Assembly (NCBI GenBank): GCA_964247055.1
Contig: OZ176051.1
Coordinates: 5,704,001 to 5,768,000 of the forward strand
Reading direction: 5' to 3'
Length of the DNA: 64,000 nucleotides
DNA from: Paragordius varius
Lineage: Eukaryota > Animalia > Nematomorpha
The notes below the pieces were generated by a model. It was not told the DNA's origin and did no database searches. It saw only the letters and a list, made by a program, of their open reading frames with translations. Both the position numbers and the translations under genes were made by a program. How positions within the stretch are numbered: the first letter of the stretch is position 1; each line of letters starts with the position of its first letter. Shown here piece after piece: positions 493 to 9,400 of this stretch.

Positions 493-3400
493 ATGGACAG
501 CGCATTAAGCTTAGATTTTCTTAAGTTTGTTATACCTATTTCCATTGTTATTGGAGTAGGAAGTGTAATATTTTTGTTTGGCTTTAAAAAAGCTGAAATT
601 CCTCCATCTTTTGATGATATTAGCGAAGATAAAAAGGGTAAAAAGAAGAAAATAAAATTCGAGAAGGTAAATTTTTTTAATTATCCCTTTTTAGAAAAAC
701 AAAGCTAAAACAGCGGATAATGCTAAAAAACCTGTTGCTACCAAGAAAAAGGTTGAAACGGAATCTTCAGTATGATTTTCTTTTATTTTTAGGATAAAAC
801 GGTAAAAAAAGAGGTAACCAAGCCAAAAGATAAAAAATCGAAGGATCAAGAAAAAGTTAGCAATACAGTAACAGGTTTATAAATTTTAATTAACAATTTA
901 GACGGTAGTTGGACAACAATTCCAACCAAGAAAGAGAAAAAACCAGTAGCCGTGGTCGGAAAACAAAATTCTTCCAACAAAATTTCACCCAGAGTATTTA
1001 TAATTTTTTTAAGTGTTTTAATATTTTAAATATAAAAAATACATTTTTGATTTTTAGGATATGTCTGTAGCCAGTAGTATAACATCTAGCGTTCCAATCG
1101 TTTCCAAGCCTCAACAAATTGTAAATCCGACCCTTATTAACCCTACAACAATCCATCACCATAATATGAAGTATGTCTCTTGCACTATAATGTTTTGCAT
1201 ACATTAATTAATAAAATATTATAAAATATCCAATAATGGAAAGGTTTATTTAGCTCAGGAATACCTATTGTAACACTTCTATATTAGGGGGGAGGGGCGT
1301 GGAAAAATTTAGGGATGTAAAAAATAATCTTTATATGCAAGTTAATAACATATGGCACAAACTTAAGGGGTGCAATAAAAAGATTTGCTAGTAATTATTA
1401 AGCCTTTTTTCTTATAACAAACCTACATATCTCGTAATGTAATCTTTTGTCGCAAAAAATTATTTGTAAAAATTAAAACATGATTATTAATTGAAAATGC
1501 CAAAATGGGTATAAATTTAAATAATAATATAGCGGTGAAATAAATGAATTTTGGATTTAACATTACTTGTCTGCCCATTTTTTTGCTTTTGTTTTTTATC
1601 TATTTAAAAAAATTTACAAAGCCACATAATTTAATTCTCGTTTTTTTGGTTCTAATTATATACTATTTGATGAAGGCATGGTCATAAAGTAGTTAGGCAT
1701 CCTTCTTATGCTCTTTCAAATCCTAAATTGCACAATTTTTTGAATTATTGTTAACCGGGGTAGACACAAGTTTAAAAAGTCCTGATTATTTAAAATGAGT
1801 AAAGAGAATATTTTTTCCGTTTTAAGCATGAACACAAGCAATGCGAATCCTGCTACAAGACGCTTAGGTTATGACGATGATGATACAATGAGCCCAACTG
1901 CTCTCATGATGATGGAACTTGAAAGACATCAAAGAAAAGCCGCCGCCGCCGCTGCTGCTAATAACGATTCTTTCAACCATGAAATGGCCAATAATGGTGG
2001 TGGTGGGGGCAGTAAGGAACAACGCGCTCTACGCCAAAAACTAATGGATATGATGGCTGAGGAAAGAGCTGCCATGGAACATAGAAATGTATACATATTA
2101 TCTGACTTTATGTCTTTGCCTAAAATTTAGCTTGCTTTTGTATTATTGGTTTGGCACAGTTAGTGGGATTCCATGGATTAATTTACTATATATGTCTCTA
2201 TCATTTGTTGCGTTTCGAGTTATGTTTTGGAATTTAAAAGCTTGTTCTATGATTTGAGTCCAAGTTGTTTTGATTTATCAAATATAACTTTTATTATTGC
2301 TAAAATATTAGTATGATACTTTTTACAGAGAGAGCTATTTAAAAATAAATGGCTGATGAATTAGTTCGGATACACCGAAATTTACACTCATTTATATACA
2401 TTGTCTATTTATAATACGGCGATCCATGTTGGCATGATAAACATTATATCAATAAATATTGGCTTTCAGATATATTTAGCGGTTTTTCAATTCGGAGTTT
2501 TGATTTTTATAGTTACTAAGAAAAATATGTTAAATATAATATCACTGATCATTTTTGTATGTAAAATATGATAAATTACAAAATTAAAAAATAAGAAATC
2601 ACAAATGGATTGATTAATTCGGAAAAGTAGTTTTTTTAAACAATTTGAATATTGTAAGCGTATTTGACGGGCTTTTATTTTTTCCAAACTTTTTGCTATT
2701 TCCTCAACCCGTTTTTTTAATTAAAAGTATTTTTAATTCGCATAACTGTTTTTATAAAGTTTTTAATACTATAATTATTAATCAAATGATGATAGCTCAT
2801 GCCTAATGTGGTTTGTTTAACTTTTGACCTATATCTATCTTATATATGATGTATTGTTTGTTAGAGTGTATTTAAATATTATAATACACATTTTAATCCA
2901 TTTTATAATAACTTGTGTTGGGCGTAGGGCTATCATTATTTATTTTCCCCCTAATTCTTTAATTTATTCAATTAATGACCGAATCTATTTTCATATGATA
3001 ATACATTCCAAATATCACTTAAATTTAATTAAACCACATACATATATTTTCTAACAATTTAAATTTTTAATTATAATTAAATAATTGACATTATATATAA
3101 TTGAATATAATATTTTACACATTTTTAACTTTATATGTAATATATTTAATTGAGTTGCCTATGTAATTTTGGACAGATTAAGTTTAGGTTTTCTAAAACA
3201 ATTTTTTGTAGACAATCTATTTTAATATTGTTTTCCATATTCCTACAATATTTTCATTAATTTTGAGGGTAGGATAAATTTTATCTTTGACCTGTAAAAT
3301 ATTGCAAAAAAATATCGAATTTTTTATTATATATTGCCAGTTATCAAGAAAGAGCCATATTTTCATAATCTTATTTTTCTCTACATAAACTAATACACAG

Positions 3401-6400
3401 AATTTCAAATGTGTTACCAATGTACATCTCTATATCTTATTTTTAATCCAACACGATGAGTTATAATCAATTTTTTTTAAAAAATATATCTTTAATATAC
3501 GTTTTGTCGTATAATTTTAGTAACATTTGTTTTGTTACTTATAGGCCGATGACGATTACGACATGATGCATAATAATAATATGGGACAATATCACTCAAA
3601 TATTAATAAAATGGGTCCGCCGGGTGCTTTAAATTCTCTACAAAATGCGGCCTTTTCCAATAACAGTGGAAGTACGACGAATACGTCAAATAGTATTGCT
3701 GATTGGGAGGTTATACACTCTACTGCCCCCGGTCTAGCAGCAACTGGAATGGCTAAAGGTTTAACAAAGTTTTTTTTATTTTGATTTGGGGTTATTTTTT
3801 GCCTTCTAAATAGGGATTTTCTGGTTTAAGGTTTCGAGTTCGGGTGACCTAAATTTTGGAAGAAAGCTGTTTTGTACAAAATATGGATCGTTAGTTGGTT
3901 TTTAGTCGATTTTCAGCTTTGGTTGTTTTGTTTTTGGAAAAATAATTTTCGTGTCATTTTATTTTTTGATCTGATGTAATTTTTGGTATTTTTAATATTT
4001 CATTTTCTTGATGGGATTATAATAGCCGCAAAAACATAAAAAACTTTGCCTGTTACTTTATTTTGAATAGTTATAAATACATTAGTCTTATATTTAGCTA
4101 ACAAGGAGAACAATCTGATAGGTTATTATGATTCAAAAAATATAGAAATTTTTTTGAACCATTCATAATTTTATTTGGTGTAATACGGTTTTGAAAAACA
4201 AATTTGGTTTTGGCTTTACACAATGTCGCTTCTATTTACTGCTTTAAAACATGAATAATGAAAATGTAGTTTTAGCTTATTACGGCTTATACTAACAACA
4301 TTTTTAATATTGTACTCTTGATTTATATTTTGGGTAATTTATCTGTCAAAATTTTTGGATTTACACGTGGCTTTTTATTTTAAGAGGTAAAGTTAACAAC
4401 AGGATTATTTTTGAAATATTTTTCCTAAACGTTTAAATTCATTATCCTATTTTTTAGCATTTGTTAATTACATTTAATGATTAAAGAATTAATTAAAATT
4501 GTGTTGTATTTTTTGCGTTAAATTTTCTCTATTTGGTTAATATTATCTCAATTTTTGAAATAAAAAGTAAAACTTATTTATATAATATAAATAATTATAG
4601 ATGGTGGTCAAATGTTGGAACGTATTCGACCAGTTTTGAAAATTACTCCTGAGGAGGATTGGCAAGGATTATCACATTTATCTGCTGCTAACAATGTTGT
4701 TCAAGATGAAACATCAATGCATTGGGGAGCCCAAAATCTTGTTTATGATATGGGTAGAAAAAAATATTTTTACTTTAAATTAGTTTACTTGGTTCAGAAG
4801 TGTTAAAAATATAATTTTTTATTTGGTAAATGTATGATTTAAAAATCTAAAAAGTTTTGTATTTCTCATGACAGATAACAATAATAACTCTTTATCTTTG
4901 AAATTATAATTTTCCAACTATTTTTTTGCTTGTCACAAAATTAAACATTCCCTATCCATATTATGACGGGTATACACGATGTTTCAAAAAATCTTTATGA
5001 GAAGGAGTACTAATATTCAAGTAATTAATTAAACAAACTACATAAAAAATTACCTAAATAGGTGAAATCGTTGACGATTTCGAACCTACAATCTTCGATA
5101 CTAAACTCCCTTGATTTAGGGATGTTTGGTTTCCCTGATATACATCTTTGGCATTTAAAATTTTTATTGTCGACTAATTTTCCTTTCAAGTTAGAACATT
5201 TTTTATGAACCCACATTTTACACGATGTGCATAGAATGGAATTTGTTTTAACCTCGTTGTAACAAATGGAGCAAGGGTATTTTAAGGTCCTTTTTTTATC
5301 ACCTGTGATCATTACCTTCGTCTTTTCTATGTTTATTTTTAGTCCATGTTTCGAAACAGTTATTCCATTTAAGGTATGAGCTTTTCAGTTCATGAGCTGT
5401 TTTTGCTGTTATAACCAAGTCGTCAGCATACAGCATGTTCCATGGTGGAACAGCTGCAAAGTCTCTGCTTATGTAATCCATTATTATTATAAACAGTTGT
5501 GGGCTTAGGGTTGAGCCCTGATGGAGTCCTATATTAATATTAAAATAATTTGTGTTTCCGACTGGTGTTTTAACGCAGCTTTGTGCATGTTCATACAGGA
5601 GCATTATTAATTTTATTAAATATTCCTCGATTTTTTGATACCTTAATGCCTCAATTATGAGGTGTCTGGGTATTGTGTCAAACGCTCTTTCCAGATCTAT
5701 AAAGATGTGGAACAGCTTATGACCTTTTGCAAGGTATTTTTCTTGTAGGCGATTTAAAATAAAAATGGGTTCCGATGTGCTTTTACCTTCTTGAAAAGCA
5801 AATTGATTTTTATTTATTGTTATATTTTTGATCTATTTTTGATAACTGTTTCAAAGATTTTCATTCCGTGCTCTAAAAGTTTTAATGGGCGGTAGTTGGA
5901 GCAATCAAGGGCATCTCCTTTATTTTTATAAACGGGGTAAATGTAGCTTTTGTCCCAATCGGTTGGTATTGTGTTGCTTTTGTATACCAAATTAAACAGC
6001 TCTACCAAAAATTTAACAGTTATTGGTGTGGCCTTCATTAAATCTGCAGAGATCTCAGAGGGCCCAGTGGCTTTGTTAGATTTCATGTTTTTCATTACTA
6101 TTGCTATTTCGTCTGGAGTGAATTCCTGAATGGGGCCTTGTATGGCAGGATTTTCATGTGTAGTAACCTTAGATTCAGGGGGGTTAAATTTAGTTTCCAT
6201 AAATTTTTCCCATCTGTTTATTATGTCGTTGGGATTGATAAGAATATTATGTTCATCATCTTTAACGCAACGAATATTTTTGATATCCTTTTGGTTTTGA
6301 TTGTAGTTTTTGATTTTTCTAAAAATCAAGGGAGTTTAGTATCGAAGATTGTAGGTTCGAAATCGTCAACGATTTCGAACCTATTTAGGTAATATCAGTA

Positions 6401-9400
6401 ATAATAATGGGGACCCTCAAACAACCATATCACATAGAATCAAACTCGGCTGGGCAAAATTTAACCAACTCAAATATGTATTGACACATAAAGATATAAC
6501 CGTAAAAAATAAAATCAAAATGTATAAAGTGGGTGTCCGCCCTACCCTTACCTACGCCAGCGAAACCTGGGCAATCACAAAAACATTAGAATCGAGATTG
6601 AAAAGAACGGAAGATAAAATGCTAAAATATAAGATGATAAATCCTACCATTGAACTAGAACCAATAACAGCTTTTATCAGAACAAATAGACTTCGGTATT
6701 TTGGACACATAGACAGATCCAGTATAGACTCACCTGCAAAGGAAATTCTTGATTTACAGATTCCTGCCCCCAACCGTAAAGGGAGGCCTAAAACAACTTG
6801 GACTCAAATCATAGAACAAGACTTTAATTTCCTGAACATACCTCGAAACGCAACAAATGATAGAGACATATACCGTAAATTAATCCATGGAATCCCAATA
6901 ACTGGGCCAAACCAATAATACCATACATAAAAAATTAAAATCACATACCCAAAACGTAGTTTAAAGACAAATATTTTCAAAAAAAGGCAGCCATACTTTT
7001 CAAGGCTTAATTTTTGAATTTTAATAATTTTAAATTGACTCAATCATCCATTTATATCTCTATTCCTTATTTTACTACCCAACATAATATGTCATTTTAA
7101 TAAATTAAAGCTTAAAATATATGTTTGTCTTTTAAAAAATATTTGCCTTTTAGTTTTTACATTTTGTCCGTCTGTATAATTTACGTGCAATACCATTTTT
7201 AAGCAACATTTTTTACCCAAGCGAACGCAACATTTTTTAACTTTAAAAAATGTTGCGTTTGCTTGAAAAAATGTTGCGTTTGACTTAAAAATGATAATTT
7301 TTTAATGCGTTAGCACTCAGTGAAGAAGATACCTGGTTTGCCAATTATGGCGCTTACTTTGAGGAGGACGACAATGTTGCCAGCATTATTAGTAGTAATA
7401 CAAAGGGCAAAAAATCGCCCATTGAACGCGCCTACCTCGATGAAATTGAACGGAAACGCGAAAAACAAGCCCGTGATTTAGATCGTGGAACGTACAATGG
7501 AGCCGTCTTTGAATTTGCTGATGATCATTCACATCAAACTCATCATAATGTGGGAACTCCCTCTATGGGTATGGTGGCTGGAAATATCGTGGGTATGCCT
7601 AACACAGCTGGTAAAGGTAAGAGAGTTAGTTTTATGTTTAGTTTTGAAAAGTTGTGATTTCTAATTTTAGTAAATTTATTTTATTTTAAGTTTTAAAAAG
7701 TCCTAATTTCTCATTTTAGTAAATATATTTTACATTAAATTTATCGCAAAGGAAGTATACCATACATTACATATGGCTTTTGATCTAGCCAAATATGTGG
7801 AATTTTTGTCATAAAAATTTTCTTTGAAAATTTATATACCAACCACATTTATATATTAATACAGTAACGATAAACCAACTATTTACTAGACAACAAATTT
7901 TGACTTTATTTACGTGCCATTCGTGTAAAAAATTATATAAATAGTATATTTGAAAAAAATATTGGGCTAATACCTAAGAATTTTATTATTAGGGTTTATC
8001 TAAATTTTTTGTCCCCAATTTAACATAACATTCGAAATTTTCAAAATTAAAAATTTCAGATATAGAGCCATGTGTTATATCATATAAAAGAGCGCAAAAA
8101 ACTAAATCTTTCGAATGGTGGTTAGCCATTTATATCAATCTGATTTAAAAGTTATTTGGCTTTATATTGTTAAAATTTTAACCCTTAAATAAGTTAAATT
8201 TTTCATAGACAAACTAATTTAAAAATCATATGAATTGTTTTAATATAATTATTCGGTTTACATTAGTATAAATTTCAAAAAAATATTTTAAAGCTTTTGG
8301 TTTGCTTTTTTAAAAATTATTATTATCATAATTATTTACCTGATGAAATATGATGGTAATTTTATTAAAAACACAAAAAATTAATGGCTGTTTTTAATGA
8401 CATAAAATGATTAAATATTATATCATTTAGACATTCATTCCCATATACATAAAGTTTGAGCTATTTTATCCATTAGTTTTAAAAATATTTTTAGAAAAAC
8501 GTTCTTGCTTCGGGGGTTTGTCGCTTCCTATGTCCAATATTAACCATCGATGTAAAACATAAAATGCATTTTATAGAGTTTTCATTACTCTGGAATTTGT
8601 TATATATTTCCAAAACTTTTAGTAAAAGAGGGCGCATAATCATATAAAATCAAATTATACTAAATTTTTAGGTGGAATTAAGATTTTGATTTCAGTTTTT
8701 CTGTTAAAATGATAGTAAATATTAGAAAATACAAAAAACTCGAGTGGCAGAAAAATTTCTTGCCTAGTGTTATATAACACTCATAAAACGAGATATTATA
8801 ATTAATAAAATTTTAATTATTATTTAACTAATTTTTATCGTATAAAAAAAGGTTACCACATTTACATCAATTACTCAACTCATCTCATTATTATCATTAC
8901 ATGTTTTTGCCATAGGTGCTAACAAAAAGGGTATGTTTGTCGGTGGTGTTGGTACTGGAAACTACCCCGTGGGCATTGGTAATTTAATCCCGGGATTACA
9001 ATCAGCCAGTGGGACAAAAGTTCCTTACTATCAGAAATCTACGACGGATGATTTGGATTCAACGACGACTACCCCATATAAGCACAGTCCGGCCGGCGGT
9101 GCTAAAAATAATAGTATTAACACTGGAAAAAATGTTGGCCCAGCTACACATGATATGATGGATAATTCTAGTGGTCTTGCCAATGGGATGAATACTGGTA
9201 TAATGAGCGAAAATTATATTTTCTTATACTATGGGCTTTTATTATATCTTTTGCAATGAACCCTTTTTGAACTGGGGTGATTTTATTATTCCGAAAGAAT
9301 GATTTCATAGGATTATTAATAATTAACTAGTTATTTTATGGTACCGAATTTCTTTAGCAAAATAGATTTATAGGATAATAACAGCTTTTTATACATAATT

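Follow-up and report, generated by a model that had tools for sequence, protein, structure and literature searches.

The insertion in the window

The window analysed here is a 64,000-nt stretch of the genome of the nematomorph Paragordius varius (assembly GCA_964247055.1, contig OZ176051.1, forward-strand positions 5,704,001 to 5,768,000), an AT-rich host, with an A+T content of 73% in the window. It carries an insertion of a long interspersed nuclear element (LINE), RTE-like in its architecture, in which a 5' arm in antisense orientation is followed directly by a 3' arm in sense orientation, with a single pair of target-site duplications (TSDs) enclosing both (Table 1). A first interpretation of the locus, made from the letters of the DNA and referred to below as the sequence-only reading, attributed this structure to twin priming, whereby the second target nick primes internally on the element RNA, and the results presented below support that proposal.

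Table 1. Features of the insertion, with window positions
Feature	Position	Strand	Basis or remarks
Upstream TSD, TACATAAAAAATTA, 14 bp	5039-5052	.	Direct-repeat match, 100%
ATTA microhomology, 4 nt, common to the TSD end and the inverted-arm start	5049-5052	.	Reference copies read ...GGTAAT/ATCAG here
Inverted (antisense) arm: most of the reverse transcriptase (RT), PHD finger, FTYLGN motif	5049-6323	-	Positions 1484-2750 of reference L033:4307-7590
Left (inverted) copy of the duplicated 69 nt	5049-5117	-	Self-comparison and alignment with other copies
PHD-finger coding stretch, between RT palm and FTYLG	5142-5273	-	PF00628, E 3.6e-6, residues 14-57 of window:5049-5312:-
Inversion junction, within a CTAAA patch present in both segments	6320-6326	.	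Comparison to the 99%-identical C1 copy
Sense 3' arm: C-terminal part of the open reading frame (ORF), stop codon 6916-6918, 3' untranslated region (UTR) of about 5 nt, no poly(A)	6323-6922	+	Reference positions 2682-3279
Right (sense) copy of the duplicated stretch, 71 nt owing to the GA insertion	6323-6393	+	Self-comparison and alignment
Private 2-nt GA insertion	6377-6378	+	Absent from about 30 other copies and from the insertion's own inverted arm
Downstream TSD copy, 14 bp	6924-6937	.	Flank, not element: other copies diverge right after ...AATAATACC(T)

The two TSD copies are identical at 14 of 14 positions, as had been proposed earlier, and they adjoin both ends of the whole structure. 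The inverted arm bears out the earlier description of an antisense RT segment; it contains RT motifs and a PHD finger, it carries several frameshifts but no 3' end of its own, and its end reads ...FTYLGN. In element coordinates it represents the region just upstream of the sense arm. The latter had been described as starting at the FTYLG motif; it is present, but its start precedes the end of the FTYLGN codons by 69 nt. On the plus strand the motif reads FRTYLGN... from position 6373, the frame then remaining open to the stop codon, and the 3' end of the arm is the same as that of about 30 other copies.

An inverted duplicate of about 70 bp had also been noted, and it is present although its copies differ in length. 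They match perfectly over segments of 54 nt and 15 nt, between which the right copy has the dinucleotide GA; the GA insertion aside, they are identical at 69 of 69 positions. The left copy forms the outer, TSD-proximal end of the inverted arm, and the sharing of ATTA between the end of the TSD and the start of the antisense segment was likewise confirmed; these four nucleotides may mark the internal priming site on the RNA (GGUAAU). At the inversion junction, the antisense arm tracks its relatives through position 6323 and the sense arm does so from 6323, leaving an overlap of 0-1 nt. The GA insertion shifts the reading frame and renders an interrupted palindrome perfect, with 15-nt arms at 6352-6366 and 6369-6383; it looks like a templated quasi-palindrome correction that occurred during cDNA synthesis or later.

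Comparison with a collinear copy on C1 yielded identities of 99.2% for the inverted arm and 98.4% for the sense arm. The suggestion that the insertion is recent is in line with the 98-99% identity to this nearest relative and with the 69/69 match between the arms, but the reading frame has already been broken in several places.

Collinearity of the family

When the genome was searched with the two arms, their matches in other copies lay on opposite strands and overlapped by 69 bp; therefore, both parts are contiguous and the 69 bp single in those copies. The C1 relative carries an uninterrupted ORF of 629 amino acids that extends straight through the junction region (...EIVNDFTYLGNISNN...), and each of about 30 copies aligned over the duplicated stretch contains it once. 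The sequence-only reading had allowed that the family itself might carry the 70-bp inverted repeat, and this is removed by the single occurrence of the stretch in these copies. The inverted repeat is, therefore, not part of the element, and the inversion very probably arose at insertion.

Recurrence of inverted copies

The sequence-only reading had also proposed counting inverted insertions within the family. We compared 28 copies by BLAST to the natural reference L033:4307-7590, using neither a consensus nor frame repair, and classified a total of 39 copies with 3' ends, 12 of them from the hit table alone, while a motif search located about 70 3' ends in the genome. An inverted 5' arm beside a sense 3' arm was found in 11 of the 39 copies (28%), at different sites and with different breakpoints (Table 2), a share which is provisional because 12 of the 39 were judged by the table alone and because about 70 3' ends exist.

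Table 2. Inverted copies, with positions on the G000 contigs
Copy	Junction	TSD (bp)	Arm-to-arm identity
Window copy	Duplication, 69	14	69/69
C2:11.355M	Duplication, 274	13	91%
C2:3.208M	Duplication, ~120	9	93%
C2:9.905M	Duplication, ~125	No clear TSD	88%
C3:9.648M	Duplication, 108	14	95%
C4:5.624M	Duplication, 68	No clear TSD	92%
C4:8.286M	Duplication, 86	9	86/86
C5:6.185M	Deletion, 2 nt	15	Not applicable
C5:6.247M	Duplication, 92	11	92%
C6:2.466M	Duplication, 27	No clear TSD	87%
C6:5.168M	Deletion, 137 nt	No clear TSD	Not applicable

Nine of the 11 junctions carry duplications (27-274 bp) and two carry deletions (2 and 137 bp). Whenever there is a duplication, it occupies the outer extremity of the inverted arm, on the TSD side, a position which twin priming requires and which fold-back priming does not produce. 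Moreover, the inverted arm of two copies reaches to within 13 nt of the 5' end of the element, which would be expected if the second cDNA ran to the 5' end of the RNA. Copies with a duplicated stretch show 87-100% identity between the two arms. The old copy at C2:11.35M has arms that are 91% identical to each other versus 83-87% to the references, and this closer relationship between the arms fits an origin from one RNA in one event. Given the spread of arm identities, such events have been repeated over a long time.

The inverted copy at C5:6.247M (L053, G000 C5:6246800-6253000) carries a 938-bp foreign insertion within its sense arm as well as a 117-bp internal deletion near the 3' end. A possible breakpoint hot spot near the palindrome, where a stretch of 14 nt contains three 5' ends and one of about 2 nt contains two internal priming sites, was considered but is not proposed, this being no more than the local breakpoint density would produce.

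Target-site duplications and microhomology

The background frequency of junction-abutting repeats was estimated from artificial pairs of flanks, the left one taken from one copy and the right one from a different copy. Among 756 such pairs, repeats of at least 9 bp occurred in 0.5% and the longest was 10 bp. TSDs of at least 9 bp were present in seven of the 11 inverted copies, in one of 14 collinear 5'-truncated copies and in one of three full-length copies, and the difference between the inverted and the truncated classes is significant (Fisher p = 0.007). It is sharper when the comparison is limited to copies with at least 92% identity to the references, where such TSDs occur in 6/6 inverted versus 1/10 truncated copies (p = 0.0009). 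The TSDs of the seven inverted copies and the full-length copy are 9-15 bp long. For most of the 14 collinear 5'-truncated copies, young ones included, no target duplication was detectable.

The seven inverted copies with TSDs of at least 9 bp could also be compared at the upstream junction between the TSD and the inverted arm. Five of them show microhomologies, of 4, 3, 2, 5 and 5 nt, and the remaining two carry 2-4 extra nucleotides in its place, such that microhomology of 3-5 nt is found in four of the seven well-preserved inverted copies.

Origin of the inversion

The geometry of the locus, its duplications and microhomology, the collinear source family, the recurrence of the structure at ten further independent loci and its link with long TSDs lead us to conclude that the window insertion is very probably the product of a single retrotransposition event of an RTE-like LINE that was completed by twin priming. 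The order of the nicks and both priming events, which we infer from the sequence, would be as follows. The endonuclease of the element would nick the bottom strand, and the 3' end so produced would prime reverse transcription at the 3' end of the RNA, the first cDNA, corresponding to the sense arm, stopping after about 600 nt. The top strand would then be cut 14 nt downstream, and its freed 3' end (...ATTA) could anneal to UAAU just past the FTYLG codons and prime a second cDNA internally, extending for about 1.27 kb towards the 5' end of the RNA and yielding the inverted arm. The first cDNA would have overrun the internal priming site by 69 nt, that stretch being thereby copied twice, and the two cDNAs would have been joined at position 6323 with little or no microhomology. 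The implied pre-insertion site would read ...AAACAAAC, a single TACATAAAAAATTA, and then AAATCAC...

Several points weigh against this interpretation. The pre-insertion site is deduced, and the arrangement of the locus read, from the present assembly only. The 2-nt indel between the duplicated copies calls for a later mutation or a copying slip, and there is hardly any microhomology at the inversion junction. Four older inverted copies lack a clear target duplication, and the census covers only 39 of the approximately 70 detected 3' ends, with 12 assigned by hit table alone.

Inversions do happen in genomes, and nothing at the window locus times the inversion relative to the insertion; thus the element could have inserted as a collinear 5'-truncated copy, the 5' part of which was inverted later at the DNA level by breakage and repair or by recombination. 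We regard this as very unlikely. A later inversion would neither generate a 69-bp duplication positioned precisely where the inverted arm meets the TSD nor set one of its breakpoints exactly at the boundary between element and TSD with a 4-nt microhomology; the same geometry would need to recur at ten other loci, and the association with long TSDs is not predicted.

There is a similarly small chance that a collinear element was mis-joined during assembly. Assemblies are prone to errors in repeats, and the locus is read here from the assembly itself. An artefact of this kind, however, would not give a perfect TSD around the whole structure, place the inverted arm flush with it, or yield eleven loci with different breakpoints that all show the twin-priming geometry. 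Missed-adapter chimeras, for their part, produce palindromes of the same region and not the inversion of a neighbouring one.

The near-palindrome within the duplicated stretch could suggest self-priming of the first cDNA by hairpin fold-back. Template switching is a known activity of LINE reverse transcriptases (PMC4476161), and template jumping could likewise be considered; an origin by either route is extremely improbable. Fold-back predicts a palindrome about the junction, but none of the 11 copies mirrors the adjacent sense sequence there; the junction-proximal end of the inverted arm derives from a part of the element about 1.2 kb further upstream, with the duplicate located at the far end. 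Template jumping keeps the strand and, consequently, generates chimeras rather than inversions.

Two independent insertions of the family, side by side and in opposite orientation, are scarcely credible even for a multi-copy family with another fragment 3 kb away in the window, given that the antisense arm lacks the 3' end which target-primed insertions always keep, that a single TSD pair encloses both arms with no inner pair present, and that the arms are identical at 69/69 positions over their common stretch and contiguous in element coordinates.

Structure and affiliation of the element

Full-length natural copies, of which four were found, comprise 3,284 bp together with 89 bp of common 5' sequence, about 3.37 kb in all. 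They encode an apurinic/apyrimidinic-type endonuclease (APE; PF14529/PF03372), an RT (PF00078) and a PHD finger, all in one reading direction. In the natural full-length copy L033, consecutive ORF fragments on one strand encode first the APE and then, directly after it, the RT. Only 5 nt follow the ORF at the 3' end of the element, which has neither a poly(A) nor a microsatellite tail. The closest database proteins, whose names are automatic labels, are 1000-1090 amino acids long and combine APE and RT in one protein, many of them with the same PHD finger; the best named match is a filarial nematode protein with RT and PHD finger (45% identity), and soybean proteins of about 1000 amino acids show 31% identity. 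A word search with the APE domain alone returned two unnamed matches only, with no informative name.

A compact build with APE and RT in a single ORF and a very short 3' UTR is established for the RTE clade. The element is clearly not an L1, and the RTE label given to it by the sequence-only reading fits the features available, namely APE plus RT, a size of about 3.37 kb, a 5-nt 3' UTR and the absence of poly(A); we use the term RTE-like on these architectural grounds only.

The PHD finger is located between the RT palm, after the YADD motif, and the FTYLG region, and it was also detected at residues 381-424 of L031:1096-2982 (-). It is present in the intact relative and in many homologues of other organisms, and no description of a PHD finger in RTE elements was found in the literature searched. 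At the full-length 5' end, L055:2501-2573 (+) matches the hepatitis delta virus (HDV)-like ribozyme drz-agam-1 with 30.3 bits (E 4e-4), a value below the gathering score of 37, and the match starts within a few nucleotides of the common 5' end of the element. An HDV-like ribozyme at this end is probable, with a match below threshold.

Comparison with known systems

In L1, between a fifth and a quarter of the copies are inverted, and the inverted share found here is similar. Twin-priming 5' inversions of mammalian L1 were reportedly described by Ostertag and Kazazian in 2001. The insertions described above further resemble those of mammalian L1 in having one TSD pair around an inverted 5' arm and a sense 3' arm, small duplications or deletions at the junction, and microhomology at the internal priming site. 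They also share the occurrence of long TSDs in inverted copies and of often short ones in truncated copies: for L1, long TSDs are a feature of inverted and full-length copies, short ones a peculiarity of truncated copies, and inverted copies show the longer microhomologies (PMC2912911). The contrast between truncated and inverted copies seen in the present family is a more extreme version of this L1 pattern. Unlike L1, the element has a single APE and RT ORF within about 3.37 kb, no poly(A), a 5-nt 3' UTR, a PHD finger in the RT region and a probable HDV-like ribozyme, and unlike L1 inversions, those observed here occur in an AT-rich invertebrate host and yielded more duplications (nine) than deletions (two).

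In cell culture, human L1 in human cells accounted for essentially all inversions, which there accompany duplications of 10-20 bp; zebrafish ZfL2-1 yielded none and Nimb-2_DR a single insert (PMC4245944). It was concluded that 5' inversions depend on the LINE species and on the host, and a 3' overhang of approximately 10-20 nt was proposed to allow the second priming (PMC4245944). The two zebrafish elements resemble the present one as APE-type LINEs that use target-primed reverse transcription, and Nimb-2_DR generates TSDs of about 12 bp (PMC4245944). In contrast to their behaviour in culture, the family examined here is a natural non-L1 family in which at least one in four of the copies studied is inverted.

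RTE elements usually end in a short tandem repeat, and the present family differs from RTE-clade LINEs in having no such microsatellite-like 3' tail and in carrying a PHD finger between the RT palm and the FTYLG region. It agrees with RTE-1, BovB and plant RTEs in its size, its single APE and RT ORF and its TSDs of 9-15 bp, and at the 3' end in the brevity of the UTR and the lack of poly(A), though not in the tail. Published TSDs of the RTE clade measure 7-15 bp, most often 10-12 bp (PMC6007223, citing Ichiyanagi and Okada 2008).

The view expressed in the sequence-only reading that twin priming is rarely described for RTE elements agrees with our literature searches. No paper on 5' inversions in RTE-clade or invertebrate elements was found, with most subscription journals lying outside the search, such that the absence of a report is unproven; the papers searched describe this footprint almost exclusively in mammalian L1. 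The mechanism is already known, and what appears to be new is its high frequency and its occurrence in an RTE-like clade and in a non-mammalian host, no paper having been found on these points. On balance, we favour the view that twin priming has been frequent and long-running for this RTE-like LINE in a non-mammalian animal, accounting for about a quarter or more of its insertions and showing an L1-like dependence on long TSDs. If this is true, the 3' overhang at the target would, through its length, govern 5' inversion, rather than any feature peculiar to L1 or to mammalian cells. A natural family from another clade and another host bears directly on the overhang proposal (PMC4245944), and it could provide a second system in which to test it. 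In the annotation of this genome, head-to-head RTE fragments should be merged as single events and not recorded as two insertions.

Flanks and neighbouring sequence

The left flank of the insertion is unique in the genome, whereas the right flank (6924-7185) is a copy of a high-copy repeat of about 260 bp, for which a first look yielded 750 candidates at 66-85% identity. Inverted repeats occur at 7203-7282, and the target duplication coincides with, or is close to, the start of several copies of the high-copy repeat. It seems that the element inserted into a repeat resembling a miniature inverted-repeat transposable element, about 14 bp in from its edge. A search of the organism's own genome for an empty or paralogous site gave no clean comparison, the copies of the right-flank repeat being too diverged at 66-85% identity.

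A short 5'-truncated fragment of the same family, covering reference positions 3147-3278, is located 3 kb upstream of the insertion at window positions 2140-2271 (-). Elsewhere in the genome, four copies (G000 C3:3141492-3141851, C6:7269364-7269725, C7:4388413-4388767 and C5:2026267-2026620) share the same 5' start, at query position 1530 of the genome search with the insertion. They match 13 nt into the window flank, several of them carry a common diagnostic base in the 3' motif, and they may represent secondary duplicates or a short non-autonomous derivative.

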